In this document: piece after piece, positions 5,932 to 52,207 of the stretch
Layout of the letters: each line of letters begins with the position of its first letter
Position numbering within the stretch: the stretch's first letter is position 1
The notes under the pieces: model-generated
Told to the model about the DNA's origin: nothing
Databases searched by the model: none
Seen by the model: the letters and a program-made list of their open reading frames with translations, nothing else
From: Macrostomum lignano
Lineage: Eukaryota
Direction of reading: 5' to 3'
DNA: 64,000 nt
Assembly (NCBI GenBank): GCA_002269645.1
Contig: NIVC01000903.1
Span: 272,459 to 336,458 of the forward strand
Translations under genes and position numbers: made by a program

Positions 5932-6843
5932 TATATGCAAATAAACTTATTTTAATTCTGCTATTTTAACACTAAGACAGAGTTATGAAACGTAAGAATT
6001 TGTTTTAAATTTTGCCATCGTGGAGAAGTTTATTGAGTACTTTTGGGGGGGGCTTGATGTAGTACCGTTGTGTCGGCCCGGAGAAATTGGATTGGTACAT
6101 CTAGGAAAGTGGATAAATTAGTTTCGAAAAATGGAGAAATCAGACAATAAAATGTAAATTATCTTTTTAAATTTACGTCAACCAAAAAACAAAAAAATAG
6201 AATCCGAAACTGATCAGACAATAAATTCCTTGTCAAAAATAAGTGGAGTTGCACAGAGTCTTCTGGAGAAGGCCAATGACTGGGATAGTACCACGATGAA
6301 ACTGTAGTCACCATATTAAACATCAATAATATAAAAAGCGTATTAAATTTCGGCGGGTGAGTAAAATGAGAAAAAAGCAACTAATAAGCTGAGATATGGT
6401 TGAATAACATAACAAAGTGAGGCAATTTTCTGATAAGAATAAAGCATTCAAACAACCATTGGAGACAGTCGAAAGCAGAGAATTAATATAATTTTTAGAG
6501 AAATCATTTGTAAGAGATTCAATTTAGACTACTGAGAAAAGTAGACGAATAAAAATTTGAATCGGTAATCTCTCAAATAGCCTGAAAAATGTCGCCATAA
6601 AACAAATGGCTTTATGACTGACGAAGGCAAACAAATCAGAAACCGGGTCTGCTTGCGACCTCCAATTTTAGTGTATCACATAGTTCTTGAATTGCATCAG
6701 GCTTTTCAGAACATTAAAAACATCAGCTCTATATTTAGTACATATGGACTAGATATTTAATTCAACCAAAATTCTCGATTCCCGAGTGCTCAATCATAAT
6801 TATATTGGACCTCCATCGCCAACCAATCCATCCGTACCTTGTA

Positions 6844-9588: not shown

Positions 9589-9968
9589 GCTGGAGTGGCA
9601 GGCTGGAGCAGCGGCAGAGGCTTGGGCGGCAACCGGAGGCTGGCGAGGACCGGCGCATTTAAGCTGAAAACGCGGAATAGGAGGGGGAGAGAAGGGAGGG
9701 TAGGGCAGCGGAGAGTAAACTAGATTGGCTGCCCTCAGTTGAGCAACAAGCAGAGCAGTGCCAGCAGCCATTTCAACAAGTGGTTGCTATGGGTAACAAA
9801 AAACAAATTGCTGCGTCTGGTATCCCTCCCCCGCGCCGGCTTGTCTCTAGCTATACATTTACAATATCTAACTGCCCATCTCAGCACCTCTGTTAATTGG
9901 CGTGCACTTAGAATAGCCCAGTGAGACTTCTTTCTCTTTAAACGGTTTTTGGTTTGACATATTGAGAT

Positions 9969-10954: not shown

Positions 10955-13231
10955 CAGGCGCGTCGCCACGGGGGGGACAGGGGGACATGCCCCCCTCCCA
11001 GTAAATGCTATGGGGGGACATGCCAATGCTTTGTCCCCCCACCCCACCTTGTGACCCGTTGTGGTAATCAATCATGTTTCTTCAGGGCGCCAAAAATATA
11101 GCGCCTTCGGCGCAAAATGAGTGCCTGCGGCGCCAAAAGGAATGCCTGAGGTGCCAAAATGAGTGCCTGCGGCGCCAAAATGAATGCCTGCGGCGCTAAA
11201 GGAATGCCTGAGGCGCCAAAATGAGTGCCTGCGGCGCCAAAAGGAATGCCTGAGGCGCCAAAATGAGTGCCTGCGGCGCCAAAATGAATGCCTGCGGCGC
11301 TAAAGGAATGCCTGAGGCGCCAAAATGAGTGCCTGCGGCTCCAAAAGGAATGCCTGAGGCGCAAATTGAGTGCCTGCGGCGTCAAAATGAATGCCTGCGG
11401 CGCCAAAATGAATGCCTGCGGCGCTAAAAGGAATGCCTGCGGCGCCAAAATGAGTGCCTGCGGCGCCAAAATAAGTGCCTGCGGCGCCAAAATGAATGCC
11501 TGCGGCGCTAAAAGGAATGCCTGCGGCGCCAAAATGAATGCCTGCGGCGCCAAAATGAGTGCCTGCGGCGCCAAAAGGAATGCCTGAGGTGCCAAAATGA
11601 GTGCCTGCGGCGCCAAAATGAATGCCTGCGGCGCTAAAGGAATGCCTGAGGCGCCAAAATGAGTGCCTGCGGCGCCAAAAGGAATGCCTGAGGCGCCAAA
11701 ATGAGTGCCTGCGGCGCCAAAATGAATGCCTGCGGCGCTAAAGGAATGCCTGAGGCGCCAAAATGAGTGCCTGCGGCGCCAAAAGGAATGCCTGAGGCGC
11801 AAATTGAGTGCCTGCGGCGTCAAAATGAATGCCTGCGGCGCCAAAATGAATGCCTGCGGCGCTAAAAGGAATGCCTGCGGCGCCAAAATGAATGCCTGCG
11901 GCGCCAAAATAAGTGCCTGCGGCGCCAAAAGGAATGCCTGAGGCGCCAAAATGAGTGCCTGCGGCGCCAAAACGAATGCCTGCGGCGCTAAAGGAATGCC
12001 TGAGGCGCCAAAATGAGTGCCTGCGGCGCCAAAAGGAATGCCTGAGGCGCAAATTGAGTGCCTGCGGCGTCAAAATGAATGCCTGCGGCGCCAAAATGAA
12101 TGCCTGCGGCGCTAAAAGGAATGCCTGCGGCGCCAAAATGAATGCCTGCGGCGCCAAAATAAGTGCCTGCGGCGCCAAAAGGAATGCCTGAGGCGCCAAA
12201 ATGAGTGCCTGCGGCGCCAAAATGAATGCCTGCGGCGCTAAAGGAATGCCTGAGGCGCCAAAATGAGTGCCTGCGGCGCCAAAAGGAATGCCTGAGGCGC
12301 AAATTGAGTGCCTGCGGCGTCAAAATGAATGCCTGCGGCGCCAAAATGAATGCCTGCGGCGCTAAAAGGAATGCCTGCGGCGCCAAAATGAATGCCTGCG
12401 GCGCCAAAATAAGTGCCTGCGGCGCCAAAAGGAATGCCTGAGGCGCCAAAATGAGTGCCTGCGGCGCCAAAATGAATGCCTGCGGCGCTAAAATGAGTGC
12501 CTGCGGCGCCAAAAGGAATGCCTGAGGTGCCAAAATGAGTGCCTGCGGCGCTAAAAGGAATGCCTGCGGCGCCAAAATGAATGCCTGCGGCGCCAAAATA
12601 AGTGCCTGCGGCGCCAAAAGGAATGCCTGAGGCGCCAAAATGAGTGCCTGCGGCGCCAAAATGAATGCCTGCGGCGCTAAAGGAATGCCTGAGGCGCCAA
12701 AATGAGTGCCTGCGGCTCCAAAAGGAATGCCTGAGGCGCAAATTGAGTGCCTGCGGCGTCAAAATGAATGCCTGCGGCGCCAAAATAAATGCCTGCGGCG
12801 CTAAAAGGAATGCCTGCGGCGCCAAAATGAATGCCTGCGGCGCCAAAATAAGTGCCTGCGGCGCCAAAAGGAATGCCTGAGGCGCCAAAATGAGTGCCTG
12901 CGGCGCCAAAATGAATGCCTGCGGCGCTAAAGGAATGCCTGAGGCGCCAAAATGAGTGCCTGCGGCGCCAAAAGGAATGCCTGAGGCGCAAATTGAGTGC
13001 CTGCGGCGTCAAAATGAATGCCTGCGGCGCCAAAATGAATGCCTGCGGCGCTAAAAGGAATGCCTGCGGCGCCAAAATGAATGCCTGCGGCGCCAAAATA
13101 AGTGCCTGCGGCGCCAAAATGAGCGCTGACAAAACCGATTCTCAAAATAATGGACATGTAGGAATTTATTCATGTACATGTTGCGTTCTTTGCTTTGTTC
13201 CCCCACCATAAAATCCATGGCAACGCCTTTG
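10955..13231. mobile_element. Non-autonomous hAT-type DNA transposon carrying an internal minisatellite
   Basis: 8-bp TSD AATTTACT at 10947-10954 and 13232-13239. Imperfect TIRs CAGGCGCGTCGCCACGG and CAAAGGCGTTGCCATGG (reverse complement of right end), 12/17 match. G/C-run subterminal sequence; no transposase. Confidence 0.82.
11085..13125. repeat. 20/21-bp CpG-rich minisatellite (GCGGCGCCAAAATGA[A/G]TGCCT) with 250-bp higher-order period
   Basis: About 97 monomers. Diagnostic variants recur at 250-bp spacing (ORF starts 11726/12226 and 12665/12915). Confidence 0.95.
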
Positions 13232-13635
13232 AATTTACTCGTGACAATGCTGCGCTTTGCGAGAAGTATTCGAATAGAAATAAAAACCCTAGCACTAACT
13301 AGCACACTGACTATTTTTGCGACATGTTTCGGCTCACGTTAGGCATTTTCCGGCTCATAAGTAATTAGAACCAGCAAACTAAGGAATGTGTCGATACATT
13401 TTAACCAAAAAGGGTCGATTTACGACGGTATATTGTACATTTAGAGAAACCAATCACACAGATCAAGAGGTTATAAATAGTGCGCGGCATATGAGAGGAG
13501 AGAAAGGAGAGATGTAAGCACGAGTAGTGTGTGCCTATGACCTTTTAGTCGTGAGTCGGACGCTCTGACCACTAGGCTACAGCCCCTACAACCTATCCAA
13601 TGCTATGCAAACCTGTCTGACATCTGCAGCGCAAT

Positions 13636-13936
13636 ATGCGAAGCGGCCGGTTCCGCGCCAGTCCACTGCAGCTTGGCTTAGTCTGCCTCTACCTAGCGGG
13701 CGCCGCCGCCACTGCCTCAGCGGCCGCCGTGGCCGCCGCCACCGCAGCCGCAGCCAGCTCCGTCACCCCTGCCGTCAAGGCGCCGGTTGTTCCGTCCCCG
13801 TCGCTCCCTGTCCGCAGCGGTGGCGACGGCGGCGGCGCGGACAAGCGATTCTTTCGCGTGATGAACTGCGCCGAACGATGCGAGAGCTTCAACATCAAGG
13901 TCTTCAAGGCCTATTGGGCGATTCACCATTCAAATA
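13636..13936 (+). pseudogene. Duplicated exon 1 of the secreted prepropeptide gene; no matching exon 2 found (probable truncated copy)
   Basis: About 99% identical to the reverse complement of 32285-31985. Acceptor TCTGCAG precedes the ATG; GTAAGT donor at 13937. Homology to the other copy stops near 14712, and the NFIQYLRDL exon was not seen downstream on +. Confidence 0.6.
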
Positions 13937-14030
13937 GTAAGTTATAGCTTGTATTGTCCTTTGTTCAGCATGTGTGAACTGTCTTTTTTGATGGTAGGCG
14001 TTGCTGAGACAATGCCCTAAAAACAGGCTA

Positions 14031-14283
14031 CTGGCATCAACCCTCAGTAGGTTACTAGCATCAACCCTCAGTAGGTTACTGGCATCAACCCTCAGTAGGT
14101 TACTAGCATCAACCCTCAGTAGGTTACTAGCATCAACCCTCAGTAGGTTACTGGCATCAACCCTCAGTAGGTTACTGGCATCAACCCTCAGTAGGTTACT
14201 GGCATCAACCCTCAGTAGGTTACTGGCATCAACCCTCAGTAGGTTACTGGCATCAACCCTCAGTAGGTTACTGGCATCAATCC
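14031..14283. repeat. 24-bp VNTR (GGCATCAACCCTCAGTAGGTTACT), ~10 copies
   Basis: Same unit as 31280-31892 in inverted orientation. Confidence 0.96.
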
Positions 14284-14461
14284 TCACCGCAGTCAAAGTA
14301 AGCTGAGCTGAAGTTCACCCAATAACCACTAGCATAGCAGGAAAATGTGACATTTCAAATTGCATTAACAAGATGGGAAGTTTTCAGTTCCTGGCAGTCA
14401 ATAGTCGACTTCTTACCTTCTGCCTTATCGATTGATTGTTTTTGACTGTTGAAAAAGCTGA

Positions 14462-14712
14462 GTTGTAGCCTAATAGTTAGAACAACCCACTCGGAACAAT
14501 TTGTGTCCTTGAGCAAGACACTTAACTCTGCATTGCTTCAGCTCACCCAGCTGTAAAATGGGTGCCAGCATTAGCTGGGGTAATTGAGGGTGTGTGTGGC
14601 GACCCCCAGTCCTTGGACTGAACAGCCGTACGCAGCCTTCAGATGCGCCGCGCAATAGCTGCGGCTGAGCTGTCGGTTGCACATCTGCCATTAGGGCAGG
14701 TGTAATCAGTAA
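14462..14712 (+). mobile_element. tRNA-derived SINE family 1, internally deleted copy
   Basis: Matches 32335-32631 (TGTGTCCTTGAGCAAGACACTTAAC...CACCCAGCTGTAAAATGGGTGCC...) but lacks most of the tRNA head, including the B-box. Confidence 0.8.
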
Positions 14713-16172: not shown

Positions 16173-19100
16173 TCAGGGGGACCCGTCGGTCTCGCCTGCA
16201 GCGCGGTCCTCCTCACCGACGGTGGGGAAGAAATCAGCTCGTCCGGTGTCCCTGAGGTACCGGGCGAGCAGTGGGATGCTCTCGGGCCTGCAAACGTCGG
16301 AGAGAACCGGGTTTGGCCCGAGGTGAGTAAGCCTGGCCCTGGTGAAAACCGGGCAGTGGCAGATAAAATGCTCGGCGTTTTCACTGCCTGAGCGGCAGAA
16401 GGGGCACCGCTCCTCGGGTACTTGGCCCTGAAGGAAGCGGTGGCGAGAGAAGCAGCCATGCCCGGAGAGGGCCATGCTAACTGCTCTGAGGTCTCTGCGG
16501 TTGAGCCTGAGGAGGGCTCTACGCAGGAGAGGAGAGGGACAGGGGACGGCAGCACGGGATTGCCTACAATTCCGGGTGTCGTGCCACCTGCGGAGATGCT
16601 CGGAGTCAGCCCAGCGCTTAACGCGGGAATTGATCACCGAGGCGGGGATGGGGGCACCCGGGCCCGGCCCCAATAGCGCGCCGGCGGAGCCAGCCTTGGC
16701 CAGCAGGTCAGCGCGCTCGTTGCCGAGGAAGCCGGCGTGGCCCGGGATCCATCTGAGCTCCACCTGGTTGCCTAGCGCAAGCCCGTTGAGCTGGGTGTTG
16801 CAGTCCAGGACGGACCTGGAGCTGGCGGTGCTGCGGCAGAGGGCCGAAGGGCTGCTTGGCTGTCAGAGTGAAAAATAAATTTCCGGCCGCTAAGCTGCCT
16901 TCGGCGCAGCTCTGCCGCGCAGGAGCTGATGGCAAGCACCTCGCTCTGAAAAACACTGGAGTTGAGCCCAGTGTGCTGGGAGTAGCTCCACACCACTTCT
17001 CCCTTGAAGAAGACGCAAGCTCCGAAGCCTGAAAGACCATGCCTCATAGAGCCGTCAGTGTAACAGTGGACTTCAGAGTCGCTCCAGCTGTCACTCGCCT
17101 CGTGTCGAGGCTGAATGGTGACCTTATACCTTTGGCTCAGGAGAAGGGCGGCTGGGATCGAGTCCGTGAGGATGTTGAGCCCGCCACACTCCTCGAGAGC
17201 CTTGAGGCAGAGGTCAGAGTGCGGGATAAGCGACCGCTTCTTAAAGGCCCGCACTTTCTTGAAGGCCACCCCAGCATCCAGAAGACGCCGGGTGCTCTTC
17301 GCCGCCTCTCCTTTGATATAAATATCCAAAGGAGGGGCGCAGAGGAAGGCATTCATGCCTTCAAAAGGAGTAGAGGGTGGAGCGCCCATAGTCATGCGGC
17401 AGGCTCTGCCCTGGATTTTGTAGAGAGCGTCGAGGTTGCTCTTGACGCTCAGGCCGCTAGCCCACACGAGGCTGGCGTAACTGATCGAGGGGCGGATGAT
17501 GGCAGTGTAAATCCACCACAGCTTCCTGGGGGTGAGCCCCCAGGTGGTGCCCACGGCGCGCCTGATCTGAGCCAGTACAGCCAGGGCTTTTTTGGCTTTA
17601 GTTTGAATGTGCGGAGTCCAGTTAAGCCTGTGGTCCAGAGTGAGGCCCAGGCAGCGGACCTGCTTCTCCATGGAAATATTCTTTCCATAGAGGGTGAGGG
17701 GCTTAATGGTCCAGAGCAGTTTGTTGGTAAACATGACTGCTGTGGTTTTCGACTCTGAGAGTCTAAGGCCACATTGGTCTGCCCAACGCTCCGCTCGTCC
17801 CAGAAAGCCCTGCAGAAGGTCTCTGATGGTATCAACCGAGGGGCCCGCGCATATCGCGGTCACATCATCGGCATAGCCCACCTTGAGAATGGGGTCGTGG
17901 AGATCACTGCAAAGCAACTCATCCATGACCATGTTCCAGAGAACGGGGGTGAGAACGCCGCCCTGGGGGCCCCCTTTCAGGACAGGCACCGAAAGAGAGC
18001 TGCCGCTCAGGTGGGCCACAACAGTGCGGTTTCGGATCATGAACATGATCCACCGGACAAGGTGAGGGTGCGTGGCCCTGGATTCCAGGGCTCTGCAAAA
18101 GGCCTCGAAGATGACGTTGTCGAAGGCCCCCTCAATGTCCAGGAAAAGCGAGAGGGCAAAGCCGCTGCCAAGAACGGCCCTCTCCAGGAAGTCAACAATG
18201 ACATGGAGAGCACTCTCGGTTGACCTGCCCGCGCGGAAGGCGTGCTGGTTCTGCGAGAGTGGGAAGCGCTTCAGCTCGACCGAAAGTAGGCGCCAAAGCA
18301 CCAGTCTCTCGAGGAGCTTGAGGCAGAAAGAAGTGAGGCTGATAGGCCTGAAGGCCTTCACCGATTGGTAGTCGCTCTTTCCAGGCTTGGGGATAAAGAC
18401 CACCCGGGCCTCTCTCCATGCAACTGGTACATAGCCCAGCTCCATACAAGCTCGAAGGAGACGACAGAGCAGGTCCAGGAAGCGGTGGTTTTTCACCGCC
18501 TCGTGCAAGAACGCTGGGTAGATGCCGTCGGGCCCAGGCGCCTTGAACGGGTTAAAGGACCTTGCCGCTCTAATAATGCGGTCTTTGGTGATCATAGACT
18601 TTGCTAGGCCTTGCCCTCCCACTGTGTGGTCGGGCGGGCCCTGCTGAGTCGGAGATTTAGGGAAAAAACTGTTGAGCATGAGCTCTAGAGTCTCTTCCGA
18701 ACTCTCTGTGACCGAGCCGTCAGGTCTCTTCACAACAGAGAGTTTAGAAAAACGGTCATTAGTGAGTGCCTTAACCACGCGGGCTACGGGGCGAGAGCCC
18801 TCAAGCCCTTCGCAATATTGGCGCCACTTGGCCGTCTTGGCCCTTCTGACTTGGCCCTTAAACTCGTGGATCGCACGGGTATAGGCCTCTCTGTCAGATG
18901 GGTCTTTGGTTTTGAGCGCTCGCCTTTGGAGGGTCCTGGCTCGGCGCCGAAGGGCCCCGAGCTCTGGGTTCCACCAGGGAGCAGATTTCTTGCCTTTATA
19001 GGCCTTTAGGGGGCAGGCTGCTTCAAAGGCAGTGGTGATCGCCCCGCCCAGGGAGGAGGCGAGATCGTCCACCACCTGGCAGTCAGAGAGGTCACTGGGG

Positions 19101-19875
19101 GGTCAAGATCCCGAAGGCCGCGGCTCAGCTTCGAGCCAAAGGCGGCCCAATCGGTGTTTCTGACGTTCCGACTCCAAGTGACCTTAGGCTTTTGCTTGGT
19201 CGGCCCAATGCAAAAGCGGATAAAGCGGTGGTCCGAGAGCGAGTCCTCGTCCCACACTCGCCAGCCCGTAACTGCGGAAAGCAGTCCGGGTGAGGCGATG
19301 GTGGTGTCGATGACTTCGGCCCACCGCCCATTATTGAACGTTGGTGCATTGCCCACGTTACAGAAGTTGAGGTTAGTGCTGCTGACATAGGCCAGCAGCT
19401 CCTCGCCTCTGCTATTGATGTTCTTGCTGCCCCAATGCAGGTGGTGTGCGTTCACATCCCCTGCAATGAGCAGCTCGAACCGATGGGACGCAGCATAGTC
19501 AGTAAGGTTGACTAACGCGTCGCAGACAACTGGGGCATCGCCCGGGAAATAGGCAGAAGCTACCAGCACAGGTTTATTGGGAATGAGGTTATTGATTTGA
19601 ACAACACAGATGTCCCCAGTCGAGAGATCAGGTCTCATCCATGCCTCAAAAGCTTTTGCAGCAAAGACCAGAGATCTTGGGCGAGGCTGAGAGCCCGCCA
19701 TGCAAAAACAGTGGTAGCCAGATGGCACATTATTTGGCTTACCTTTAGTCATCCAGGGCTCCTGTACGAAGACCAGGCCCGGAAGCTGTTGCTCTGCCGT
19801 GCGCATCAGGTTGACCGACGCCGCCACGCAGTGCTGGGTGTTGATCTGCAGACACCAGGTAGTCGTTGGCATCAT
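16173..19875 (-). CDS. LINE ORF2 polyprotein (APE endonuclease, reverse transcriptase, RNase H, C-terminal CCHC), with two 1-nt frameshifts in this assembly
   Basis: EN: LQINTQH, VQEP, GDVNAH, IDTTI, SDHRFI. RT: KAPGPDG, RPISL, DIEGAFD, PQGGVLTP, YADD. RNase H: YTDGS, VFQSEV, SDSQAAL, WIPGHAGFLGNERAD. CPFC-x8-H-x4-C. Adding 1 nt at G6 19097-19102 and at CC 16844-16845 restores a single frame of ~1230 aa. Confidence 0.92.
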
Positions 19876-21392
19876 TGCAGATCGGATGTTGCAGCCGCCA
19901 GGAGTTCCTCCTCCTCCTCGGCGCTCACCGGCTTCGGGTCGGGGTCGCCGGTGTCCATGGGCTCTTCTTCAGCAAAAGGCCCCCGATTGGCCGGAAGGCA
20001 GTAGGCAGCGTTCGCCGCCCTTTGCCCACCATCCATGGGGTCCTCCGCCTCAGATTGGCCCAATGCCCTGGAGCAGCCAGCCGCCTGGGCAGGCGGGTCC
20101 GTCTCCAGTCGGCCCTGCCCCGAGGGGTTGGGCCCAGCTGGGACGTCCCCACCCTCCCTGGACGAACTGGTGCGCCTAGGCGTCCCGGCGACCTCTCGCC
20201 TCAGCTGGGAGATTTTGGCGGTACGGACTGCCTCAGCTGCACGCTGGTACAGGCCGCGCCGCTTGGTGCTACGCGCCGGGCGTCGGTCGCCTCCGCCCTC
20301 AGCAGCGCGCTCAGCTTTGCCCGCGCGGCCGTGCTGCCGGGCAGGGCGGTTTGCTTTGGCAGTCTGAGCAGAGGCTTGCGCCTCGGCCCCGGCCGCCTCC
20401 GCATCCCGCCCGCCCTGCTCACTGCCACGGGGAGGGTCGGCCTCGTAGGAGCGGATGCGCAGCTTCCAAAGGCCGACGTTGATGAAGCTGCCGTGTGGAT
20501 AACGCCTCATCCAGGCGTCCGACAGCCCCAGGATGGCTGTGAAGCCAGTGCCGTCGGTGCGCTTAAGGGTGTCATGCACCACTAGGCCCGCGGCGGGAAG
20601 CTCCCGGTTGACTGCTAGCAGTCCTTTCCGGAGCTCGTCAGCAGAGGTAACAACGCTCCTGGCCGGGACCCAGATTCGATGCCTCTTGGTCCGGGGGCGC
20701 TCGTCCTCTCTGCAGAAGGCTAGGTTGAGGTCCCAGCTCTGCTCGGGCAGCAGCTCAAGGAGCCGCCGACCCGAGTCAGCATCACTGGGCCAAATGAGAA
20801 GGCACGAGTCCCTCGTCGCATTCGAATGAATGTTCAGAGGCGTGCCCTTCAGAGTTTGCTTCCACAGGAGGCCATCAACGGCACTTCTCACCTGCTTCAG
20901 CTGATCGGGAGACAGGCGCGCGTCCTTTCCCAGGATGACAACCGCCGGTTGCCTCTTTGCCGCATCAGCGTAGGAGGCCCGGGGGTCAGTGGAGCTTTCT
21001 TCAGGTGGGCTGTCCACCCTCCCGGCTGCATCGGCCTCCCTATCCTGGGCAGGGGCTTCCGTGGGCTCGAGGCCCTCTTCCGCCACCGCCCCAGACTGGG
21101 AAGCTTCCGCTGCCGCGGGCCGTTGGCCCCTGGCACCGGTTTGGCTTCCGCCCTCCTTGGCCCGCCTCGCCTTGTTAAGTCGACGGCGGGCAGCTCCAGA
21201 GGTGGTGCTGCGTTTCTTAGCAGCTGGAGTAGCAGGTGTCTTCTCGGAGGCACCGCTCAGAGTTGGCTCCACGGGTCTCGCCGAGGCGTCCCCGATGGTA
21301 GCAGGTGGTATGGCCGAGGAGTCCACGGCCCCAGCCGAGGCCGGAGGCACTGTGTCATCCACAGCCGGTTTGTTACTTCGGTTAGAAGCCAT
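19872..21392 (-). CDS. LINE ORF1 (nucleic-acid chaperone-like, ~506 aa)
   Basis: Open from ATG 21392 (MASNRSNK). Low-complexity basic N- and C-termini flank a globular core (RQPAVVIL...KLRIRSY). No CCHC knuckles. The stop overlaps the ORF2 start (ATGA). Confidence 0.82.
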   Translation of the reverse strand: MASNRSNKPAVDDTVPPASAGAVDSSAIPPATIGDASARPVEPTLSGASEKTPATPAAKKRSTTSGAARRRLNKARRAKEGGSQTGARGQRPAAAEASQSGAVAEEGLEPTEAPAQDREADAAGRVDSPPEESSTDPRASYADAAKRQPAVVILGKDARLSPDQLKQVRSAVDGLLWKQTLKGTPLNIHSNATRDSCLLIWPSDADSGRRLLELLPEQSWDLNLAFCREDERPRTKRHRIWVPARSVVTSADELRKGLLAVNRELPAAGLVVHDTLKRTDGTGFTAILGLSDAWMRRYPHGSFINVGLWKLRIRSYEADPPRGSEQGGRDAEAAGAEAQASAQTAKANRPARQHGRAGKAERAAEGGGDRRPARSTKRRGLYQRAAEAVRTAKISQLRREVAGTPRRTSSSREGGDVPAGPNPSGQGRLETDPPAQAAGCSRALGQSEAEDPMDGGQRAANAAYCLPANRGPFAEEEPMDTGDPDPKPVSAEEEEELLAAATSDLQ

Positions 21393-21959
21393 TGGCTGGA
21401 AGTAAAAAGGTGGGACTTCCTGCAGAACACAGGCAAAGAGCCGCAAGGCCGCAACCCCAAACCAAGCGGCAGGCCCCCAAAAAGCAAAATACCACCCTGC
21501 GGGGGACCCAAAAGCGCAAGGGGAACCGTTAGCGACCAGACTACTCCCTGGCCAAGCGTCCATCAGCACGGAGTTACACTGGGACATTAGAGGGTGCGTT
21601 TATGGTCACACCAGGACCCGGCGCCAACGAATCAGCTCGGCAGGGCCCAAGGGGGCCTGCCTTAACACCCACGGGACGAGTACCCTTCGAAGTGCGCCTT
21701 GCAAGGTGAAAATCAGGAGACAGAGTCTCTTGAGCTATCAGCCCGCCAGGGGAGGCAGGTGTGAGCATCGCTGGCTGGGATAAAGGCCATACCAGTCTCA
21801 TACTGCACAGATAGTTCACCACGCCATTACGTGCAGGACCCGGGGTCCTGGGGGCAACAGCCCCGGCTGGGCCCAAGTCTAAATTGTCTGAATTGAATTT
21901 CCGCTAGTTTTTTAGAACTGGACTTTGATCAAAATTGAACGTGAAAAGGTGTAGTGAAT

Positions 21960-22543
21960 CTATGGCTGCTCTGCAGCCAGCAGATTTTCAGAGTGAATGC
22001 TGTGGCTTCTTGTGGGTACGCTCGTAGATGCAGATGTCTATGGCTGCTCTGCAGCCAGCGGATTTTCAGAGTGAATGCTGTGGCTGCTTGTGGGTACGCT
22101 CGTAGATGCAGATGTCTATGGCTGCTCTGCAGCCAGCGGATTTTCAGAGTGAATGCTGTGGCTGCTTGTGGGTACGCTCGTAGATGCAGATGTCTATGGC
22201 TGCTCTGCAGCCAGCGGATTTTCAGAGTGAATGCTGTGGCTGCTTGTGGGTACGCTCGTAGATGCAGATGTCTATGGCTGCTCTGCAGCCAGCGGATTTT
22301 CAGAGTGAATGCTGTGGCTTCTTGTGGGTACGCTCGTAGATGCAGATGTCTATGGCTGCTCTGCAGCCAGCGGATTTTCAGAGTGAATGCTGTGGCTGCT
22401 TGTGGGTACGCTCGTAGATGCAGATGTCTATGGCTGCTCTGCAGCCAGCGGATTTTCAGAGTGAATGCTGTGGCTGCTTGTGGGTACGCTCGTAGATGCA
22501 GATGTCTATGGCTGCTCTGCAGCCAACGGGTTTTCTCAGAGTG
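21960..22543. repeat. 78-bp tandem repeat, ~7.5 copies
   Basis: Unit TCTATGGCTGCTCTGCAGCCAGCGGATTTTCAGAGTGAATGCTGTGGCTGCTTGTGGGTACGCTCGTAGATGCAGATG. Confidence 0.97.
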
Positions 22544-23041
22544 AGTGCTCAGGCTTGAGGGGCAGAAGTGGTTTTAAAGCAGAGAGTATCGCTAATTTTA
22601 CAGCTAATTGCAGTATAGTTTTACTATAATAAATGCACTTCTTTGAATACTTTCCCTGAATAACTCGCTCTCATCATAGTCACCGTCTCTACAACAGGAT
22701 TTGAAGATTTGAAAATTAACCGCACTGATTCAGTGAAGTGTTTTAGCAGTACTCGAAGAGGGCCGAGGGTTACACGGGTTTCCCTCATGAGAAAAAAGAG
22801 TAAAAGACAATGGCGAGGCGACGGAGCTGATGCATCATACATTTTCTTTCCTTTCCATGGAAACAATTGTTCTTAAACTGCAAACCCTTCACGCTGCCTG
22901 ACAGCCAATCCATCAACTGACTCCTGCCTTTCACTCCTCCTTCGTCTCTCCTTTTGAATTTTTCAGCTTAAATGCGCCGGTCCTCGCCAGCCTCCGGTTG
23001 CCGCCCAAGCCTCTGCCGCTGCCCCAGCCTGCCACTCCAGC

Positions 23042-24322
23042 ATGCGCGCCGCCCTTCTCGCCCAGCTGCTTCTCTGCATCTCCCGGGCTGCCGCCGACTT
23101 ATCGACCGGCTGCTCGGAGAAGGTGACCTTCACCCGCGTGAGCACGCAGGTGCTCGACTGCATCGATCCTCGCTTTGCGATGCCCGACCTGTCAGGCGTC
23201 AGCGATCCGAAGTCCTGCTCGTTCGCGTGCGCCAAGTTGCCCACCTGCATGGCCTTCGCCATCCTGACTGCTCCGGCTCGCTGTCGCAGATTCAACTTTG
23301 GCGCGTTCAGCCGGCGCGTCCGGTCGGTGACGCCGTGTCCGAATCGGACGGCCGACGTCTTCGTCCGCAACGTGGGCGGCGCGGTGCAGCCGGGCGCTCT
23401 GTGCGGCTCGGGCTTCGGCTTCGACTTGTTCGGCACGAAGTTCAAGCTGGAGAAGAGCAGCTTCACCTGGGAGCAGGCCAACGTGAGTGCTTTGTTTCTC
23501 AAGCTACACACTGGATAGGCTGGCAGAGTGAAATATCATTATGTACTTTAATTACAATCTAAATCCAACCGCTTCCTCACAAAAAGCGGGAGTTTCACTG
23601 GTGATGTTAGTGGCTAACGCTCTCTCTCCTCTGTTCTGTTCTTTCATTAAAAGAGCGACTGTAACTTTAGGAGAAAATTCAATCATATCTCTAGACAAGG
23701 GTTAATGCCTTAACACTTGATTGTTAAAGTTGCAGGTAATTGTAATTAAGTCGCCCTTGAGTTATGTCAGCCCAAAAACATGATTGTTATTTCCTCCTGG
23801 CTAACTTCCGAGCAGCTGACATTCGATTTCAAACTGTATGTCTACAATGGTAGATCCGGTAGTGGTTCCGCATCTTGTTGGTGCCGGCTCTATGTTTCAG
23901 AAACAAGTGTTCAAGATTAGCTAATATTTGCAATAGTAAAGCTGAACTGTAGACTTGTAATTAGTAATAACTTTCCCATGCAGACCCACTGCGAGTCGCT
24001 CGGAGGCCTGTCCCGCCTGGCTGAGCTGGTGGACCGCCAGGACATGGACCACGCTGCCATCATGGGCGGCTATCCGTGGTCCGATCACGCTTGGCTGAAC
24101 GCCTTCCAGCCGCCTGGCAGCGTGGAGCCGGACCAGGGCTGGCTGTGGCTGGGCTCCGGCCTGCCCGTGAACATGAGCAGCTCGCTGTGGGACTCGGACG
24201 ATCCCGACAACGACGTGAACCAGAATCGCATGGTGCTGGAGAAGTCAGGCGTTGTGTTCAACGACAAAGCCGAATCGGAGAATAACTACGCGCTCTGCCA
24301 GTGCGTCAGCCCGTTCGACTGA
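23042..24322 (+). CDS. Secreted PAN/apple + C-type lectin-like protein, copy B (2 coding exons, 259 aa)
   Basis: Exons 23042-23482 and 23984-24322; 501-bp GT-AG phase-0 intron; upstream acceptor at ~22967. Differs from copy A by 5 amino acids. Confidence 0.87.
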
Positions 24323-28235: not shown

Positions 28236-29075
28236 TATATTCTGGCCTAATGGGATTAGCAAACACCGAAAACGTAGAAAAAAATCCTATTAATATTGTT
28301 GCAGAACACATTGGATCCATCTGTCCGGTCTGTACCAAGCTCTCTGAACTGCCAAATTTAGCATATTCAGCAGCGAGCCATTAAAATTAGCCAGCCTCTT
28401 TCTCGGGTTTGTCCAATAGCGCCAATATTAACTGCTAGTGGTTGCCATTCAGCTGCATACCCAGCCTCAAATCTGCATCATTTCGCATGCAAATTGGCTC
28501 GCGACCACGGGGGAAAATGCTATTGCAGAGCCGTCTGGAACCTCCGCTGTGCAGAGAGGCGCTCTGTTCTAATTTTAGAGCCTGTAGAAATGCTAAAAAA
28601 ATTCTGAATCAATTTTTTCTCTCCCAACTCTCGATTTTCAGTGCATTCATATTGCTATTAGCGGTGAATCGAATATTTAGCGCCTTGAAGACTGCAGCTG
28701 GTGATTTTTTAGGTCTTTTCTCCGGCGCGCGCTGCCAGCTGCTGCCGGGTCTTCCAGTGCAGGAAGTGGCTAATTTGTGTTCCTGATGAACTCTGCCTGA
28801 CTGATACAGTAATAAGCCGAATTTTCTATCTGTTTTTTTTTTACTAGATTACGAATCATTCACTCACAGGTAAAGGTCAACTGCCGCTAAACACTGCAGT
28901 CAGCTATTTTTGCGATGGCTCAGTATTTCCGGTTCTATGGTGGATATCATGTATTTTCATTTGCTCAGAGTTGTTTGAGTTGACACGCAAAAGTTTTGAG
29001 TTCGAGCCGGAGAGCCTATAGGATTAATAAACTCATTAAAGTTCGGCTTGATCTGTTTGAAAGGGAGAAGCCTCA

Positions 29076-32000
29076 TCATCCCATCAAGTAGTCCGTGCCG
29101 CAGGTGGCGTACCGGCAAATCCAGTGTTGGGCACTTCCGTTACCGAGTAACTTGCAAATGGTAACGCAAGTTACTTTTTCGTAAAGCGTTCCTTACGCAA
29201 GTTACTTTTTTATTTTAGTAACGGAGTAACGGTAAGTTACTCAAATTTCGGAAGTCCGTTACAGTTACTTTGCAACAATCGCAATATTTAAATTAAAAAC
29301 TGAAATGCTTAGCTAGTACGCCGGTTGTCACATGTTTTTGCATTTTTCATTCATAAATTCAAAATTAAGTGAATAGTATCATATGGTATTGCGTTTAATT
29401 AATGAAGAAATACTTGAAACATGTATTACTTTGTTAATATTGGTAAAATATTTTCGCCTTTCATTGAGGCTTTTCATATTACCAATTCCAGAATCAGAAT
29501 CGGTTCGGATCTTCCAAGAAAAACAGCAGTATAACTATTTAATTCTGTTGAATGTTTGACTGCCTTAACAACCTCACATAGCACAATTTTTCACTTTCTT
29601 CTTAGCGATTTTCATTCAATAATAAAAACTTTATAGCACGTATCTCCCTCTAGTTATGGAGACAAAAAGTTATACTTCACAAATTGGTTCTGATTCTGGA
29701 ACCAGAACTAGCTATATGAAAAGGCCCATTTTCGTTACTAAAAATTTTCAAGTTTGATTCAAACAAACAACCAAAGAAAGAAATTCATCTGTAGCCTCCA
29801 CAAGTCCCTCCACTGGCACTGCAGTACACTACACCATTTTATACAGTTCTATTTATTTTACTCTATTGAATTATTGATATTCGTTTATTTTATCATTTAT
29901 AATTTTAATTATTGATTGCCATTGCCCATTGGTCCTTCTATTTGCCTCACATCGTGTCGCCAATTCCTGTCTCTGTCTGTTAATCGGTTAATCCCAATGC
30001 CCAATGGCAAATTTCGGTAACAACAATGTGAAAAAATGTGCAATGTGAAAAAAGCAGAAAATTTTGTTAATAACATGGGTAACGGAAGTGAGTAACGGAC
30101 AGTAACTTAAAAGTTACCAGGTTTTTGTCTAAAGTTACTAGGCTAACGTAAGTTACTTTTTAAAAATTGGTAACTTAAGTTACAGTAACGCAAGTTACTT
30201 TTTTTAAGTAACTTGCCCAACACTGGGCAAATCTCGTAGTCGCGAACGGCCTTGTCCAGCACGCGTTTGAAGGAGCCCAGCTCGTCCTTGTGCAGAGTTG
30301 ACCAGACCACCAGGTCGCGTAGGTACTGGATGAAGTTCACTTGAAGTGGATTGAGGAAATTTGAATAAATTATTCAAGTGGTGTTCCATTCTTAGCACTA
30401 ACAACCACAGCAACGAAGCTACTCTGTCAGAACTTAAAAAAATAGTGTCACATGGTGCGCCTCTGGATTTGCGCGCGATTTGGGCGTGTAAAGTAGCGCA
30501 CGACGAAGCGCCGGTAGGATGCCTGCAGCGTCAGTCAGCAGCATCTCCTGCGTCAGCTACAGGCAGAACGACTCGGCGCGGATGATGTGGCCTGCCAGCT
30601 TGAGTCTCCGACGGTGCAAAAGGTCGCTTGGACGGGCCAAATTTAACTAATAACTGTAACTATTAGCACTTAGGCCTTCCAATAATTAACCATATGCAGC
30701 ATTAAACATCCTGTATAATTTTGTGGGGACCGGAAACAGGCAAAAGTACTCTGTGTTTTCTAGACTGACTTTTAGCAGAGTACATTGCATCAGATGGGCT
30801 TTTAGCTCAGGACAGTTTCCAACAAACAGAAATAGTAATAAAAATTGATTACACCTGTCCCAATGGGCAGATGTGCAACCGACAGCTCAGCCGCAGCTAT
30901 TGCGCTGCGCATCTGAAGGCAGCTGCGTACGGCTGCTCAGTCCAAGGACTGGGGGGTCGCCACACAGACACTCAATTACCCGAGCTAATGCTGGCACCCA
31001 TTTTACAGCTGGGTGCACTGAAGCAATGCAGAGTTAAGCGTCTTGCTCAAGGACACAAATTGTTCCGAGTGGGTTGTTCTAACTATTAGGCTACAACTCC
31101 TCAGCTTTTTCAACAGTCAAAAACAATCCATCGATAAGGCAGAAGGTGAGAAGTCGACTATTGACTGCCAGGAACTGAAAATTTCTTATCTTGTTAATGC
31201 AATTTGAAATGTCACATTTTCCTGCTATGCTAGTGGTTATTGGGTGAACTTCAGCTCAGCTTACTTTGACTGCGGTGAGGATTGATGCTAGTAACCTACT
31301 GAGGGTTGATGCTAGTAACCTACTGAGGGTTGATGCTAGTAACCTACTGAGGGTTGATGCTAGTAACCTACTGAGGGTTGATGCCAGTAACCTACTGAGG
31401 GTTGATGCTAGTAACCTACTGAGGGTTGATGCCAGTAACCTACTGAGGGTTGATGCCAGTAACCTACTGAGGGTTGATGCCAGTAACCTACTGAGGGTTG
31501 ATGCCAGTAACCTACTGAGGGTTGATGCCAGTAACCTACTGAGGGTTGATGCCAGTAACCTACTGAGGGTTGATGCCAGTAACCTACTGAGGGTTGATGC
31601 CAGTAACCTACTGAGGGTTGATGCTAGTAACCTACTGAGGGTTGATGCCAGTAACCTACTGAGGGTTGATGCCAGTAACCTACTGAGGGTTGATGCTAGT
31701 AACCTACTGAGGGTTGATGCCAGTAACCTACTGAGGGTTGATGCCAGTAACCTACTGAGGGTTGATGCCAGTAACCTACTGAGGGTTGATGCTAGTAACC
31801 TACTGAGGGTTGATGCTAGTAACCTACTGAGGGTTGATGCTAGTAACCTACTGAGGGTTGATGCTAGTAACCTACTGAGGGTTGATGCCAGTAGCCTGTT
31901 TTTAGGGCATTGTCTCAGCAACGCCTACCATAAAAAAGACAGTTCACACATGCTGAACAAAGGACAATACAAGCCATAACTCACTATTTGAATGGTGAAT

Positions 32001-32285
32001 CGCCCAGTAGGCCTTGAAGACCTTGATGTTGAAGCTCTCGCATCGTTCGGCGCAGTTCATCACGCGAAAGAATCGCTTGTCCGCGCCGCTGCCGTCGCCA
32101 CCGCTGCGGACAGGGAGCGACGGGGACGGAACAACCGGCGCCTTGACGGCAGGGGTGACGGAGCTGGCTGCGGCTGCGGCGGCGGCGGCCACGGCGGCCG
32201 CTGAGGCAGTGGCGGCGGCGCCCGCTAGGTAGAGGCAGACTAAGCCAAGCTGCAGTGGACTGGCGCGGAACCGGCCGCTTCGCAT
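29076..32285 (-). CDS. Secreted prepropeptide-like protein of unknown family (~150 aa); last exon interrupted by a hAT MITE
   Basis: Exon 1 32285-31985 (phase 1, GTGAGT donor); exon 2 from 30339 (AAG acceptor). Removing 29122-30233 gives ...HHSNMNFIQYLRDLVVWSTLHKDELGSFKRVLDKAVRDYEICRYATCGTDYLMG*. Hydrophobic leader, Ala/Pro/Ser linker, KR site, then a 4-Cys domain. Confidence 0.68.
29122..30225. mobile_element. Non-autonomous hAT element (MITE), 1104 bp
   Basis: Perfect 12-bp TIR CAGTGTTGGGCA / TGCCCAACACTG. 8-bp TSD GGCAAATC at 29114-29121 and 30226-30233. Many subterminal AGTAAC/GTTACT motifs; AT-rich noncoding interior. Confidence 0.93.
30450..30625 (-). mobile_element. Degenerate 3' fragment of a non-LTR retrotransposon ORF (intronic)
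   Basis: Translates SDLLHRRRLKLAGHIIRAESFC* and QEMLL.TLQASYRR. RRL..AGH..R resembles RTE/CR1-type RT C-termini; stops and indels are present. Confidence 0.45.
30846..31098 (-). mobile_element. tRNA-derived SINE family 1, internally deleted copy (duplicate of 14462-14712)
   Basis: Carries the same head deletion as the 14462 copy, in inverted orientation. Confidence 0.8.
31280..31892. repeat. 24-bp VNTR, ~25 copies
   Basis: Reverse complement of the 14031-14283 unit. Confidence 0.96.
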
Positions 32286-32334
32286 ATTGCGCTGCAGATG
32301 TCAGACAGGTTTGCATAGCATTGGATAGGTTGTA

Positions 32335-32631
32335 GGGGCTGTAGCCTAGTGGTCAGAGCGTCCGACTCACGACTGACAGGTCGGGGGTTCGATTCTCGAC
32401 TCACTCGGGACAGTTTGTGTCCTTGAGCAAGACACTTAACTCTGTATTGCTTCAGCTCACCCAGCTGTCAAATGGGTGCCAGCATTAGCTGGGGTAATTG
32501 AGGGTGTGTATGGCGACCCCCCAGTCCTTGGACTGAACAGCCGTACGCAGCCTTCAGATGCGCCGCGCAATAGCTGCGGCTGAGCTGTCAGTTGCACATC
32601 TGTCCATTGGGACAGGTGTAATCAATTTTTT
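32335..32631 (+). mobile_element. tRNA-derived SINE family 1, full-length
   Basis: GGGGCTGTAGCCTAGTGG (A-box) and GGTTCGATTCT (B-box, 32386-32396); no acceptor-stem closure. Central TGTGTCCTTGAGCAAGACACTTAAC is reminiscent of conserved SINE core domains (MetaSINE-like, unverified). The body is repeated twice elsewhere in the window. Confidence 0.85.
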
Positions 32632-35214: not shown

Positions 35215-36440
35215 TTTTGAATTCCTCTGCATAGTTGTAGATTCGACATCCTGGTTGTACATCTGACATTCTGATTGTAGATTTGACATTCTAATTGCAG
35301 ATTTGACATCTTGGCTGGTTGTAGATTTGCATCCTGGTTGCAGATTTGACATCCTGATTGTAAATTTGACATCATGGTTGTATATTTTACATCCAAGTTG
35401 TAGATTTGACATCCTGGTTAGATTTTACTTCCTGGTTGTAGATTTTAAATCCGAGTTGTAGATTTGGCATCCTGGTTGTAGATTTGACATCCTGGTTGTA
35501 GATTTGACATCCTGGTTGTAGATTTGACATCCTGGTTGTAGATTTGACATCCTGGTTGTAGATTTGACATCCTGGTTGTAGATTTGACATCCTGGTTGTA
35601 GATTTGACATCCTGGTTGTAGATTTGACATCCTGGTTGTAGATTTGACATCCTGGTTGTAGATTTGACATCCTGGTTGTAGATTTGACATCCTGGTTGTA
35701 GATTTGACATCCTGGTTGTAGATTTGACATCCTGGTTGTAGATTTGACAACATGGTTGTAGATTTGACATCCTGGTTGTAGATTTGACATCCTGGTTGTA
35801 GATTTGACATCTTGGTTGTAGATTTGACATCCTGGTTGTAGATTTGGCATCCTGGTTGTAGATTTGACATCCTGGTTGTCGATTTGACATCCTGGTTGTA
35901 GATTTGACATCCTGGTTGTAGATTTGACATCCTGGTTGTAGATTTGACATCTTGGTTGTAGATTTGACATCCTGGTTGTAGATTTGACATCCTGGTTGTA
36001 GATTTGACATCCTGGTTGTAGATTTGACATCCTGGTTGTAGATTTGACATCCTGGTTGTAGATTTGACATCCTGGTTGTAGATTTGACATCCTGGTTGTA
36101 GATTTGACATCCTGGTTGTAGATTTGACATCCTGGTTGTAGATTTGACATCCTGGTTGTAGATTTGACATCCTGGTTGTAGATTTGACATCCTGGTTGTA
36201 GATTTGACATCTTGGTTGTAGATTTGACATCCTGGTTGTAGATTTGACATCCTGGTTGTAGATTTGACATCCTGGTTGTAGATTTGACATCCTGGTTGTA
36301 GATTTGACATCCTGGTTGTAGATTTGACATCCTGGTTGTAGATTTGACATCCTGGTTGTAGATTTGACATCCTGGTTGTAGATTTGACATCCTGGTTGTA
36401 CATCTGACCTTCTGGTTGAAAATTTGACATCCCAGATGCA
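35215..36440. repeat. 20-bp minisatellite (GATTTGACATCCTGGTTGTA)
   Basis: About 60 copies, homogeneous in the centre and degenerate at the edges. Confidence 0.97.
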
Positions 36441-36605
36441 ATTTCGGTATCCCATGGCATCCTGTTTATTTTTAATGGCACTATGATTAAGCTGCGAAAC
36501 TGCTCTGCTTCGCCTACTCTTTGTCAGTAGGCAGCTAAGCGTGAGCATCGTTTTGCAGTTAAAAACCTGCATTAAATCAGTTCACTGGGGGCAAAAGGAA
36601 GCCAT

Positions 36606-37932: not shown

Positions 37933-38364
37933 CGCATTCGACTCCCTCTGTGGTCCAGCCACACCAGTTCAGCCATCTCCGCAGCCACTCTTTTTTGCAT
38001 TTGTTGAGTCACCACAGATTTGACGGAGTTGTCACGGTCTAAAAGAAAAAAATTTGAATTTTTCCAATAAAAATGCCTTGATTAAGCTGCGCTGTAGCAG
38101 AAATACGATAGCAATTACCCGCCAGAATGTCCTCCGCCTCGGAGCAACCAGCCATCAGAGCTGACAAGTACAGAAAACACAGAAGCAGCGGCCTCATTTC
38201 CGTGTGTAAGTTTTTTATTTTTTGATTTCGAATGCCACCTGCCTAGTAAGTGTTTATTGAGCTTCCGGCTGGACATTGGGGGAATGGGTCTGTGAGGGGC
38301 CATTTATATGTGTGCCTGCCCGCTCTGGATTGGCCAGCAGCTGATTCTAAGGCAGATGCAGAGA

Positions 38365-39480
<1,116 letters not shown>

Positions 39481-39488
39481 CTCTTACG

Positions 39489-51200: not shown

Positions 51201-51203
51201 AGA

Positions 51204-51502
<299 letters not shown>

Positions 51503-52207
51503 CTAAGGCAGTTGTTGCATGCATTATTAGAAAAGGAAAGTCGCGCAATTATAGGTCATGCAGAGAAAGTATGTTTGAATGTAGAGTTGAATTTTATTTC
51601 CTATTTTTTTTTGTTACTACTTAAAGTAGAGAATAATCTACTTGGAATGACAAAAATAGTCTGCAGTATTTCGCCCCTTATTTGCTCTCGCATTTTTTAG
51701 CTGCTACCCGCAATAAAGGAGATTGGAGAAGACCACAAGGCTACAAAATGGCTACTTGGGTCTGCTGTTTCTCTTTTTGAAAGACGCAACAGCTGCAGGA
51801 TCGTGACTTGAGCTATTTGTACCGATGATGATGATGGGGTTCGGAGTCTGGAGCATCAATCTGCAATTACCTGTTAGATTCTGATGGTTAAAATCCGCCA
51901 GAAGTTGTGTGTGACAGCGGCTGTCTATGCCTAATTAGTTTACCTGAGACAATTTTAGGCTGACTGAGGCGTTTTATATTTATTAATTAGGTTATTATTG
52001 ATATTTCGGGTGAATTGGCCTCATTACGCATAAACTGAAGCTAGTTTTAGTACGAGTATCCAGGGTCTGAGCCAGCTGTAACTGTAGGCGTCAGCTTTGC
52101 GGACTTTCTGAAACATTTGTACGGTCGTACAGCTTGGCTTTTTTATCGATTTTTTAAATGTAGTTTTTGTTGTCAGACACAGGTTAAAGGAAGTAAGAAA
52201 CAAATGG

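Follow-up and report, generated by a model that had tools for sequence, protein, structure and literature searches.

The minus-strand locus at positions 29076-32285 of our window (the whole 64,000-nt stretch of Macrostomum lignano DNA analyzed here) raises two questions: what protein it specifies, and whether this copy can still make that protein. The original prediction, made from the letters of the sequence, had placed here a novel secreted prepropeptide hidden by an intron and a transposon, and had guessed, rightly, that the host was a flatworm. In our reading, which we consider likely, the locus is g3, a transposon-broken copy of Mlig014117, and the intact copies of this gene encode a lineage-restricted secretory precursor.

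The gene consists of two exons separated by a phase-1 GT-AG intron, and its coding sequence is cut by a transposon (Table 1). The intron splits a Met codon as A/TG, with the acceptor ttcaag lying directly before 30339. Taking out the element together with one target-site duplicate yields an open reading frame ending in ...DYEICRYATCGTDYLMG*, with the stop codon at 29076-29078 and a coding sequence of 453 nt (150 aa). A mechanical listing of the open reading frames at the locus shows nothing but disconnected stretches, 113 aa and 65 aa long, so that, as had been claimed, the gene is missed there; the predicted gene model, intron join and transposon excision proved correct base for base. The joined 150-aa product is identical to PAA75106.1 ('hypothetical protein BOX15_Mlig014117g3', Macrostomum lignano; UniProt A0A267FMU7), whose annotated range is exactly 29076-32285 of the window, and this transcript-derived public annotation joins the same exons. 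The protein sequence is therefore public already, and the claim of novelty holds in that the protein is uncharacterized and matches no named family, but not for the sequence itself. The identifiers Mlig014117 and Mlig020079, the latter denoting a paralogue group described below, are absent from the main texts and the examined supplements of the M. lignano literature. Neither the exon-1 ORF of 113 aa nor a retrotransposon ORF was on record when looked up as an exact match.

Table 1. Features of the Mlig014117g3 locus and of its partial duplicate, in window coordinates.
Feature	Position	Strand	Remark
Exon 1	32285-31985	-	ATG at 32285; coding to 31985, then donor A/GTGAGT
Predicted signal peptide including start codon, residues 1-27 (MRSGRFRASPLQLGLVCLYLAGAAATA)	32205..32285	-	Approximate cleavage point
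Ala/Pro/Ser/Gly-rich pro-segment, residues 28-69	32079..32204	-	pLDDT <50 in full-length model
Lys-Arg codons AAG CGA, residues 70-71, candidate proprotein-convertase site	32073..32078	-	Direct sequence reading
Mature domain, exon-1 part: FFRVMNCAERCESFNIKVFKAYWAIHHSN and first base of Met codon	31985..32072	-	C-x3-C pair; kept in paralogue
Intron 1, 1645 bp, phase 1, GTGAGT...CAAG	30340..31984	-	Same splice sites in sister copies
Exon 2 to insertion point (MNFIQYL...RDYEIC)	30226..30339	-	Last 8 nt (30226-30233) are one GATTTGCC copy
Non-autonomous hAT-like element, 1104 bp, within coding sequence	29122..30225	.	TIRs, target duplication, empty sister sites
Severed 3′ CDS end, 38 nt (..RYATCGTDYLMG and TGA)	29076..29113	-	Contiguous with exon 2 in sister copies
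Shortened inverted duplicate: exon 1 and 5′ intron part, without exon 2	13539..14708	+	98.5% nucleotide identity

The inserted element is hAT-like by its 8-bp target-site duplication (GATTTGCC, at 30226-30233 and 29114-29121 on the minus strand) and its 12-bp terminal inverted repeats (CAGTGTTGGGCA / TGCCCAACACTG), and it was seen once: no further copy was found in the window or in six loci examined (~140 kb in total). It is 33% GC, its longest stop-free stretch spans 65 aa, and GTAACTT/AAGTTAC motifs cluster in both of its ~120-bp subterminal regions. With non-autonomous, MITE-like hAT insertions it shares the 8-bp duplication, short inverted repeats beginning with CAG, an AT-rich non-coding body, subterminal motif repeats and sister copies in which the site is unoccupied, whereas it is longer than classic MITEs (1104 bp) and known from a single copy. 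The insertion falls inside the last 13 codons and, among the three copies of the gene, in that of the window alone.

In two sister copies, located on other contigs, the site is empty and carries a single GATTTGCC, and the two-exon ORF is intact. Both are collinear with the window from 38.8 to 22.3 kb at 92-98% identity, and no more than 3-4 of the 453 coding positions differ between the three copies, which indicates that the insertion is recent; variants specific to g3 lie at coding positions 159, 196 and 279. M. lignano is described as a neopolyploid with a redundant assembly (PMC10733133, PMC5730564). At this locus of a recently polyploid genome, a gene present in three near-identical copies has lost one of them to a transposon. 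No tandem family members were found near any of the six loci examined.

Can the window copy nevertheless give the annotated product? None of the nine boundaries at which the insert could be excised in frame gives GT..AG or GC..AG ends. As the insert is not removable by GT..AG splicing, the window copy is the disrupted one of the three, it cannot give the 150-aa product, and the sister copies are the source of the intact protein; here the original prediction, which had derived the protein from this locus, does not stand. If transcribed, the window copy would run into the transposon, and conceptual read-through meets a stop after 165 aa (...EICPVLGKLLKKSNLRYCNLSYQFLKSNLR), with loss of the fourth Cys and the conserved tail: the severed 3′ end holds this Cys, a conserved TDYL motif and the terminal Gly. 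That g3 is still functional, its transposon being removed by non-canonical splicing or somatic excision to give the 150 aa as annotated, seems to us improbable. The GenBank product is annotated across the insert, and the copy has a single non-synonymous difference from the sister coding sequences, but near-identity is what a recent insertion would leave in any case, and the annotation most likely has another source. GenBank models were built from de novo transcripts mapped by BLAT (at least 80% identity, near-best placements kept) and from RNA-seq assemblies (PMC5730564). Because transcripts were placed on every near-best locus at this identity, a g1 or g2 transcript would map to g3 with a gap, and the 150-aa model at the window locus most likely derives from transcripts of the intact copies mapped there. 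Most likely g3 is being lost following genome duplication. Users of the annotation should note that PAA75106.1 shows an intact protein where the coding sequence is interrupted. In what follows, the intact protein sequence is that of the public intact copies.

The conserved features of the gene emerge from the Mlig020079 paralogue group, which is 57% identical to Mlig014117 in the mature part. A phase-1 intron lies in the same Met codon, and the KR, the four Cys and the terminal Gly are all kept, so that a homologue carrying both the KR and the four Cys does exist. The pro-segments of the two groups do not align, and KR is separated from MNC by 3 residues in Mlig020079 vs 4 in Mlig014117; the C termini read ...DYLGPG* and ...DYLMG*, respectively. 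Over the 77 codons of the mature domain, dN was 0.35 and dS 1.23 (ratio 0.29), and by this measure the paralogue group is under purifying selection. It would be possible to regard the joined ORF as having arisen by chance from repeats and GC-rich sequence, given that homologues are confined to one species, that the N-terminal half is Ala-rich and of low complexity and that the locus is filled with repeats. The reading as a non-gene is, however, effectively refuted already: the public annotation derives from transcripts, there are three Mlig014117 copies and three paralogue copies, with intact ORFs in the paralogue and in the two sisters, the position and phase of the intron are conserved, dN/dS is 0.29 at a dS of 1.23, and the fold is confidently predicted. 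The identity to the GenBank protein, the empty sister sites, the shared paralogue features and the dN/dS ratio together place the gene beyond chance.

Searches for relatives elsewhere returned little. Against 1.84 billion protein representatives, the only real phmmer matches were the protein itself and the one paralogue group; two others (P0003, P0004) are internally repetitive, span 38-40 residues at 26% identity without Cys, and were set aside as repeat-inflated chance. No Pfam family matched at E<=10. The sole match of the sequence profile in the PDB, a Sec7/cytohesin protein (E 0.05, 17 bits), was judged chance. A scan of JGI metagenomes gave 114 pattern matches, 0 of them confirmed, and a word-indexed search, queried with the mature piece of 67 aa and with a profile of two sequences, gave no match, in an index that apparently lacks PAA75106.1 itself. 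By these sequence searches the gene has so far been found only in Macrostomum lignano.

Structure prediction sharpened the picture of the mature domain. AlphaFold2, working from just two distinct sequences, modeled it at a pLDDT of 83 and a pTM of 0.70, with helices at 7-10, 14-26, 32-45, 47-50 and 53-72. In the full-length model residues 1-75 had a pLDDT <50 and residues 78-145 one of 75-81; a helical domain that begins right after the KR, behind a disordered pro-segment, is confidently predicted. Its four Cys form C-x3-C and C-x4-C pairs 55 residues apart. The layout of leader, low-complexity pro-segment, KR and four-Cys helical domain that had been proposed is thus kept in the paralogue and agrees with the model. 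When the pLDDT-83 model was compared with the PDB in Foldseek, the best E was 5.2 and the matches included no saposin; over the PDB and BFVD together no match fell below E 2.8, and the predicted fold is so far without a structural counterpart. No match to a known family turned up in Pfam, PDB or BFVD, in keeping with the earlier statement that the family could not be named, while the likeness to saposins suggested at the same time found no support in Pfam or Foldseek. An internal KR (SFKRV) in the mature domain of Mlig014117 is absent from the paralogue, and additional cleavage may occur there.

How might the intact product be made? The leader has three Arg in its n-region and, in a heuristic reading of the sequence, small residues at -3/-1; its hydrophobic core LGLVCLYLAGAAATA has a Kyte-Doolittle mean of 1.87 over 15 aa, and that of the paralogue 2.77. 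In the intact copies this leader would take the protein into the ER. Two disulfides would pair the N-terminal C-x3-C with the C-terminal C-x4-C, as suggested by the motif and the helix layout, and would clamp the first short helix onto the end of the last one. A subtilisin-like proprotein convertase would cut after Lys-Arg to release a folded protein of ~9.4 kDa, the terminal Gly of which may become an amide. Secretion would follow, the protein serving as a signal outside the cell or as a gland product; the roles named in the original prediction were those of a possible hormone, pheromone, seminal or defence peptide. Judging from the sequence, convertase cleavage of the intact product is probable and C-terminal amidation, with the terminal Gly as candidate donor, is possible.

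Two other fates of the protein deserve weighing against this secretory precursor. The protein could be secreted or anchored in the membrane without convertase processing: either the leader would be a signal anchor, or the pro-form would itself be the final protein, such as a structural protein or a secretory protein of glands, with KR and Gly being incidental. Such a protein would be in keeping with the long Ala-rich stretch that follows the leader (residues 10-40 are drawn as a single long helix in the full-length AlphaFold model) and with the lineage-restricted secreted gland proteins that are common in Macrostomum (background in PMC5977470, PMC7336406). We regard it as unlikely, however, since both paralogues place KR 3-4 residues ahead of the conserved domain even though their pro-segments cannot otherwise be aligned, since confident structure starts just past it, and since Gly is terminal in both proteins. 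Far less probable still is a mitochondrial intermembrane-space protein with a presequence rich in Arg, Ala and Ser, a hydrophobic sorting segment and oxidized Cys-motif helices like those of twin-Cx3C/Cx9C proteins. Acidic residues are absent from the first ~60 aa of Mlig014117 and the first ~40 aa of the paralogue, and the C-x3-C ... C-x4-C pairs do sit on helices, yet the uninterrupted hydrophobic cores of both leaders better fit ER signal peptides than amphipathic presequences, the two Cys pairs lie 55 residues from each other rather than 9-16, and there is no Pfam match to the Tim10/DDP or CHCH families. Typical Mia40 substrates, moreover, lack presequences.

The secretory precursor that we favor resembles in its general layout convertase-processed prohormones such as CHH/ITP: a putative leader is followed by a spacer that evolves fast, a KR immediately precedes the conserved region, the predicted product is helical, disulfide-stabilized and ~80 aa long, and in both paralogues the C terminus is a Gly. 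No sequence or fold likeness to any family of such prohormones was found in Pfam or the PDB. The CHH/ITP arthropod neurohormones are folded and amidated proteins of ~72 aa with six Cys, whereas the Mlig014117 protein has four, and no likeness to CHH/ITP/MIH was found as a Crust_neurohorm match in Pfam or as a sequence or fold match in the PDB. The bolder proposal that Mlig014117 and Mlig020079 form a new family of folded, disulfide-clamped and C-terminally amidated protein hormones specific to macrostomid flatworms, a functional analogue of CHH/ITP with a fold unmatched in the PDB, we put forward as doubtful. Saposin-like proteins are likewise small, secreted, all-helical and disulfide-bonded, as predicted here, but they have six Cys in three disulfides, and the Mlig014117 protein has four in terminal pairs and no Pfam SapB match at E<=10. 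With twin-Cx3C/Cx9C proteins (Tim9/10, Cox17) and Cys-stabilized alpha-helical hairpins it shares two Cys pairs, spaced by roughly one turn of helix, on helices capable of antiparallel packing, and the geometry of the clamp is in principle that of helix-hairpin proteins; it differs from twin-Cx3C/Cx9C proteins in the 55-residue spacing, the two extra helices between the pairs, the C-x4-C form of the second pair, the hydrophobic leader and KR, and the lack of a Pfam match. A cationic antimicrobial peptide is not favored, as the pI values of the mature domains, 8.4 and 7.9, are close to neutral, and nothing pointed to a toxin acting on humans, animals or crop plants.

Duplicates hit by transposons are commonplace, as are secreted orphan proteins, and a flatworm genomicist would find little surprise at this locus. 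Should the intact copies encode a processed, amidated and folded signal, M. lignano would have a hormone-like ligand specific to its lineage, the function of which is directly testable since this animal is amenable to transgenesis and RNAi.

Repeats are abundant at the window locus. Intron 1 carries a 24-bp minisatellite at 31276-31897 and, at 30840-31074, a SINE-like repeat. The exon 1 of the shortened inverted duplicate (13636-13936) differs by two amino acids and has GTAAGT as its donor, and the homology stops at SINE-like copies on either side.

The minus strand of 28800-32600 was read with scripted boundaries, and the locus was reproduced exactly as described in the original prediction. 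Exon 1 (301 nt) starts with the ATG at 32285 (-) and ends with ...CAT TCA AAT A, followed by a GTGAGT donor. An intron of 1645 nt ends in the acceptor ...ccacttcaag, after which the frame resumes with TG AAC TTC at 30339 (-); the intron thus interrupts a Met codon after its first base (A|TG), in phase 1. Exon 2 ends at 30226, where the reading frame passes into an AT-rich element of 1104 bp (29122-30225). Removal of the element with one GATTTGCC gives ...GAC TAC GAG ATT TGC C joined to GG TAC GCC ACC TGC GGC ACG GAC TAC TTG ATG GGA TGA, and a joined coding sequence of 453 nt (150 aa); the mechanical ORF list has no more than unconnected fragments of it, one of 113 aa and one of 65 aa.

Pfam gave no match to the intron-spliced product, and a word-indexed protein search returned nothing. 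The latter negative is weak evidence here, since even a 100% identical 67-aa query missed PAA75106.1, yet this protein is present in the HMMER library and in the exact-sequence look-up. An exhaustive phmmer search with the same 67-aa piece, which lies ahead of the transposon, against 1.84 billion protein representatives gave two real matches: a 150-aa protein (100% identical) and a 151-aa protein (56% identical). Cluster look-up identified the first as PAA75106.1, 'hypothetical protein BOX15_Mlig014117g3' of Macrostomum lignano (UniProt A0A267FMU7), whose sister entries g1 and g2 show a one-residue difference in the pro-segment; the second represents the group BOX15_Mlig020079 g1-g3. The annotated PAA75106.1 gene is a 3210-bp range on NIVC01000903.1, base-identical to 29076-32285. 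Thus, both the guessed flatworm origin and the hand-built gene model were right, and the sequence, predicted as novel, was already in the public databases, where it is uncharacterised.

The sister genes lie on NIVC01002529.1 (L002) and NIVC01000461.1 (L003), in regions collinear with ~38.8-22.3 kb of the window at 92-98% identity, and match the window copy in donor and acceptor. Both read ...GAGATTTGCCGGTACGCC... unbroken, with a single GATTTGCC and without the inverted repeat. This is a textbook empty site, and the window carries the insertion. A copy of GATTTGCC stands at either end of the inserted sequence, which itself starts with CAGTGTTGGGCA and ends with TGCCCAACACTG. Its 8-bp target duplication, its short terminal inverted repeats opening with CAG, the GTAACTT/AAGTTAC motifs clustered within the subterminal ~120 bp at both ends, and the lack of any ORF >65 aa point to a non-autonomous element with hAT hallmarks. 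The insertion is recent, as only 3-4 of 453 CDS positions distinguish the three Mlig014117 copies. M. lignano is described as a neopolyploid, and its DV1 assembly as redundant (PMC10733133, PMC5730564), a setting that fits the knock-out of one of three near-identical copies.

If transcribed and read through, the window copy would encode 165 aa ending ...EICPVLGKLLKKSNLRYCNLSYQFLKSNLR; neither the fourth Cys nor the conserved tail at the C-terminus would be part of this product. The locus, proposed as the source of the 150-aa protein, is almost certainly a transposon-disrupted copy, the intact product being made by its sisters. In the PAA75106.1 model the 150-aa product is nevertheless intact, with a 1112-bp 'intron' that has non-canonical ends and actually consists of the transposon and its target duplication; none of the nine boundaries that the 8-bp duplicate allows has GT..AG ends. 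The assembly was annotated from de novo transcripts mapped by BLAT, at ≥80% identity and 95% coverage with near-best hits kept, and from RNA-seq assemblies (PMC5730564). With these thresholds and near-best retention, a g1 or g2 transcript would map to the window with the transposon as a gap. Multi-mapping of transcripts onto near-identical copies is therefore the simplest explanation of the GenBank product, which is likely an artefact. The transcript-derived annotation also implies a cDNA joining both exons, as predicted.

At its three loci (L004-L006) the paralogue Mlig020079 has one phase 1 intron of 278-793 bp, which splits the homologous Met codon (...CAT A|GTGAGC ... CAG|TG AAC TTC). The pro-segments of Mlig014117 and Mlig020079 are unalignable; the mature parts are 57% identical. 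KR and all four Cys are kept, and MNC..RCE, VFKAYW, MNF, LRDLVV, YE.CRY.TC.TDYL and the final Gly are among the invariant elements, with four residues between KR and MNC in one group and three in the other. Over 77 mature-domain codons, the Nei-Gojobori method gave dN 0.35 and dS 1.23 (ratio 0.29). Together with the transcript-derived annotation, these features speak for a real gene under constraint.

AlphaFold2, run on the mature domains with a two-sequence alignment, gave a mean pLDDT of 83 and pTM of 0.70, with helices at 7-10, 14-26, 32-45, 47-50 and 53-72. In the full-length model pLDDT is <50 at residues 1-75 and 75-81 at residues 78-145, so that the predicted folded unit starts immediately behind KR (residues 70-71). 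Cys 7 and 11 are modelled in the first short helix and Cys 67 and 72 at the end of the last, a layout that naturally suggests a 7-72/11-67 disulfide clamp. No significant Foldseek match came from PDB (best E 5.2) or BFVD (best E 2.8), and Pfam and PDB searches revealed no known family. The sole PDB sequence-profile match, to Sec7 domains (E 0.05), was treated as chance. Saposin, CHH/ITP and twin-Cx3C membership each failed on the defining feature tested, and the suggested saposin likeness was not borne out. The mature domains have a mass of about 9.4 kDa and, with pI of 8.4 and 7.9, are not strongly cationic.

The original prediction was thus confirmed as an observation and largely right on anatomy: leader, disordered spacer, conserved KR, conserved 4-Cys helical domain and terminal Gly. 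The precursor would be imported into the ER, where two disulfides may form; a proprotein convertase would cut after KR, the terminal Gly might be amidated, and a small folded protein would be secreted to act outside the cell. That the intact copies encode such a secreted and processed protein is reasonably probable. Relatives outside M. lignano were not found in the 1.84 billion representatives, the word-indexed collection or a JGI metagenome scan, libraries that probably lack proteins from the genomes and transcriptomes of other Macrostomum species, so that species-restricted here means no more than 'not found'. The literature searched gave no expression or functional record for the Mlig014117 and Mlig020079 gene IDs. 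The family has no name and is lineage-restricted, its precursor layout is a familiar one, and unless it proves to have a signalling role its interest is modest.

Repeats and other coding features of the window
Feature	Position	Strand	Remarks
24-bp minisatellite	31276-31897		in intron; 25.9 copies
~235-bp SINE-like repeat	30840-31074		in intron
SINE-like repeat, second copy	32399-32630		114 bp upstream of ATG
Non-LTR retrotransposon	16173-21587	-	long open frames; Pfam Exo_endo_phos_2 (endonuclease), RVT_1 (reverse transcriptase), weak RNase H
T-box domain coding pieces	2293-2715, ~3400-3767	+	Pfam T-box, E 2e-19
Cys-rich ORF	9121-9771	-	N-terminal hydrophobic leader
Cys-rich ORF, near-identical copy	23042-23518	+	N-terminal hydrophobic leader
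Minisatellite arrays (examples)	164-1681, 2717-4297, 11068-13132, 21954-22544, 35387-36572, 38243-39481, 51108-51624, 62799-63793

The intronic and upstream SINE-like copies, both present in the sister loci too, and a third at 14485-14708 are 92-95% identical to one another; ARAGORN found no tRNA genes in the whole window. The intronic minisatellite has ~26 copies in the window and L002, ~12 in L003 (array at 6390-6675) and ~11 in a truncated duplicate (array at 14025-14286), a variation that is the source of much of the gene-length difference between copies. This inverted duplicate (13539-14708, +) comprises exon 1 and the ~770 bp of intron that follow it (98% identical), with two amino-acid changes and a GTAAGT donor kept, and no exon 2 lies anywhere downstream. 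Its homology ends inside SINE-like copies on both sides, which suggests a repeat-mediated rearrangement. The retrotransposon, whose 571-aa upstream ORF has no Pfam match, sits between the duplicate and the main locus. The Cys-rich ORF has no Pfam match either; of its two copies, the one at 23 kb is inside the stretch that is collinear with the sister loci, and the one at 9 kb is part of the rearranged partial duplicate that also includes 13539-14708. The T-box pieces, separated by a coding-looking tandem repeat, probably represent two exons of one T-box transcription factor gene whose intron contains a minisatellite. Very many long minisatellite arrays throughout the window create spurious long ORFs on both strands, and their abundance fits the 15% tandem-repeat content reported for the M. 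lignano genome.
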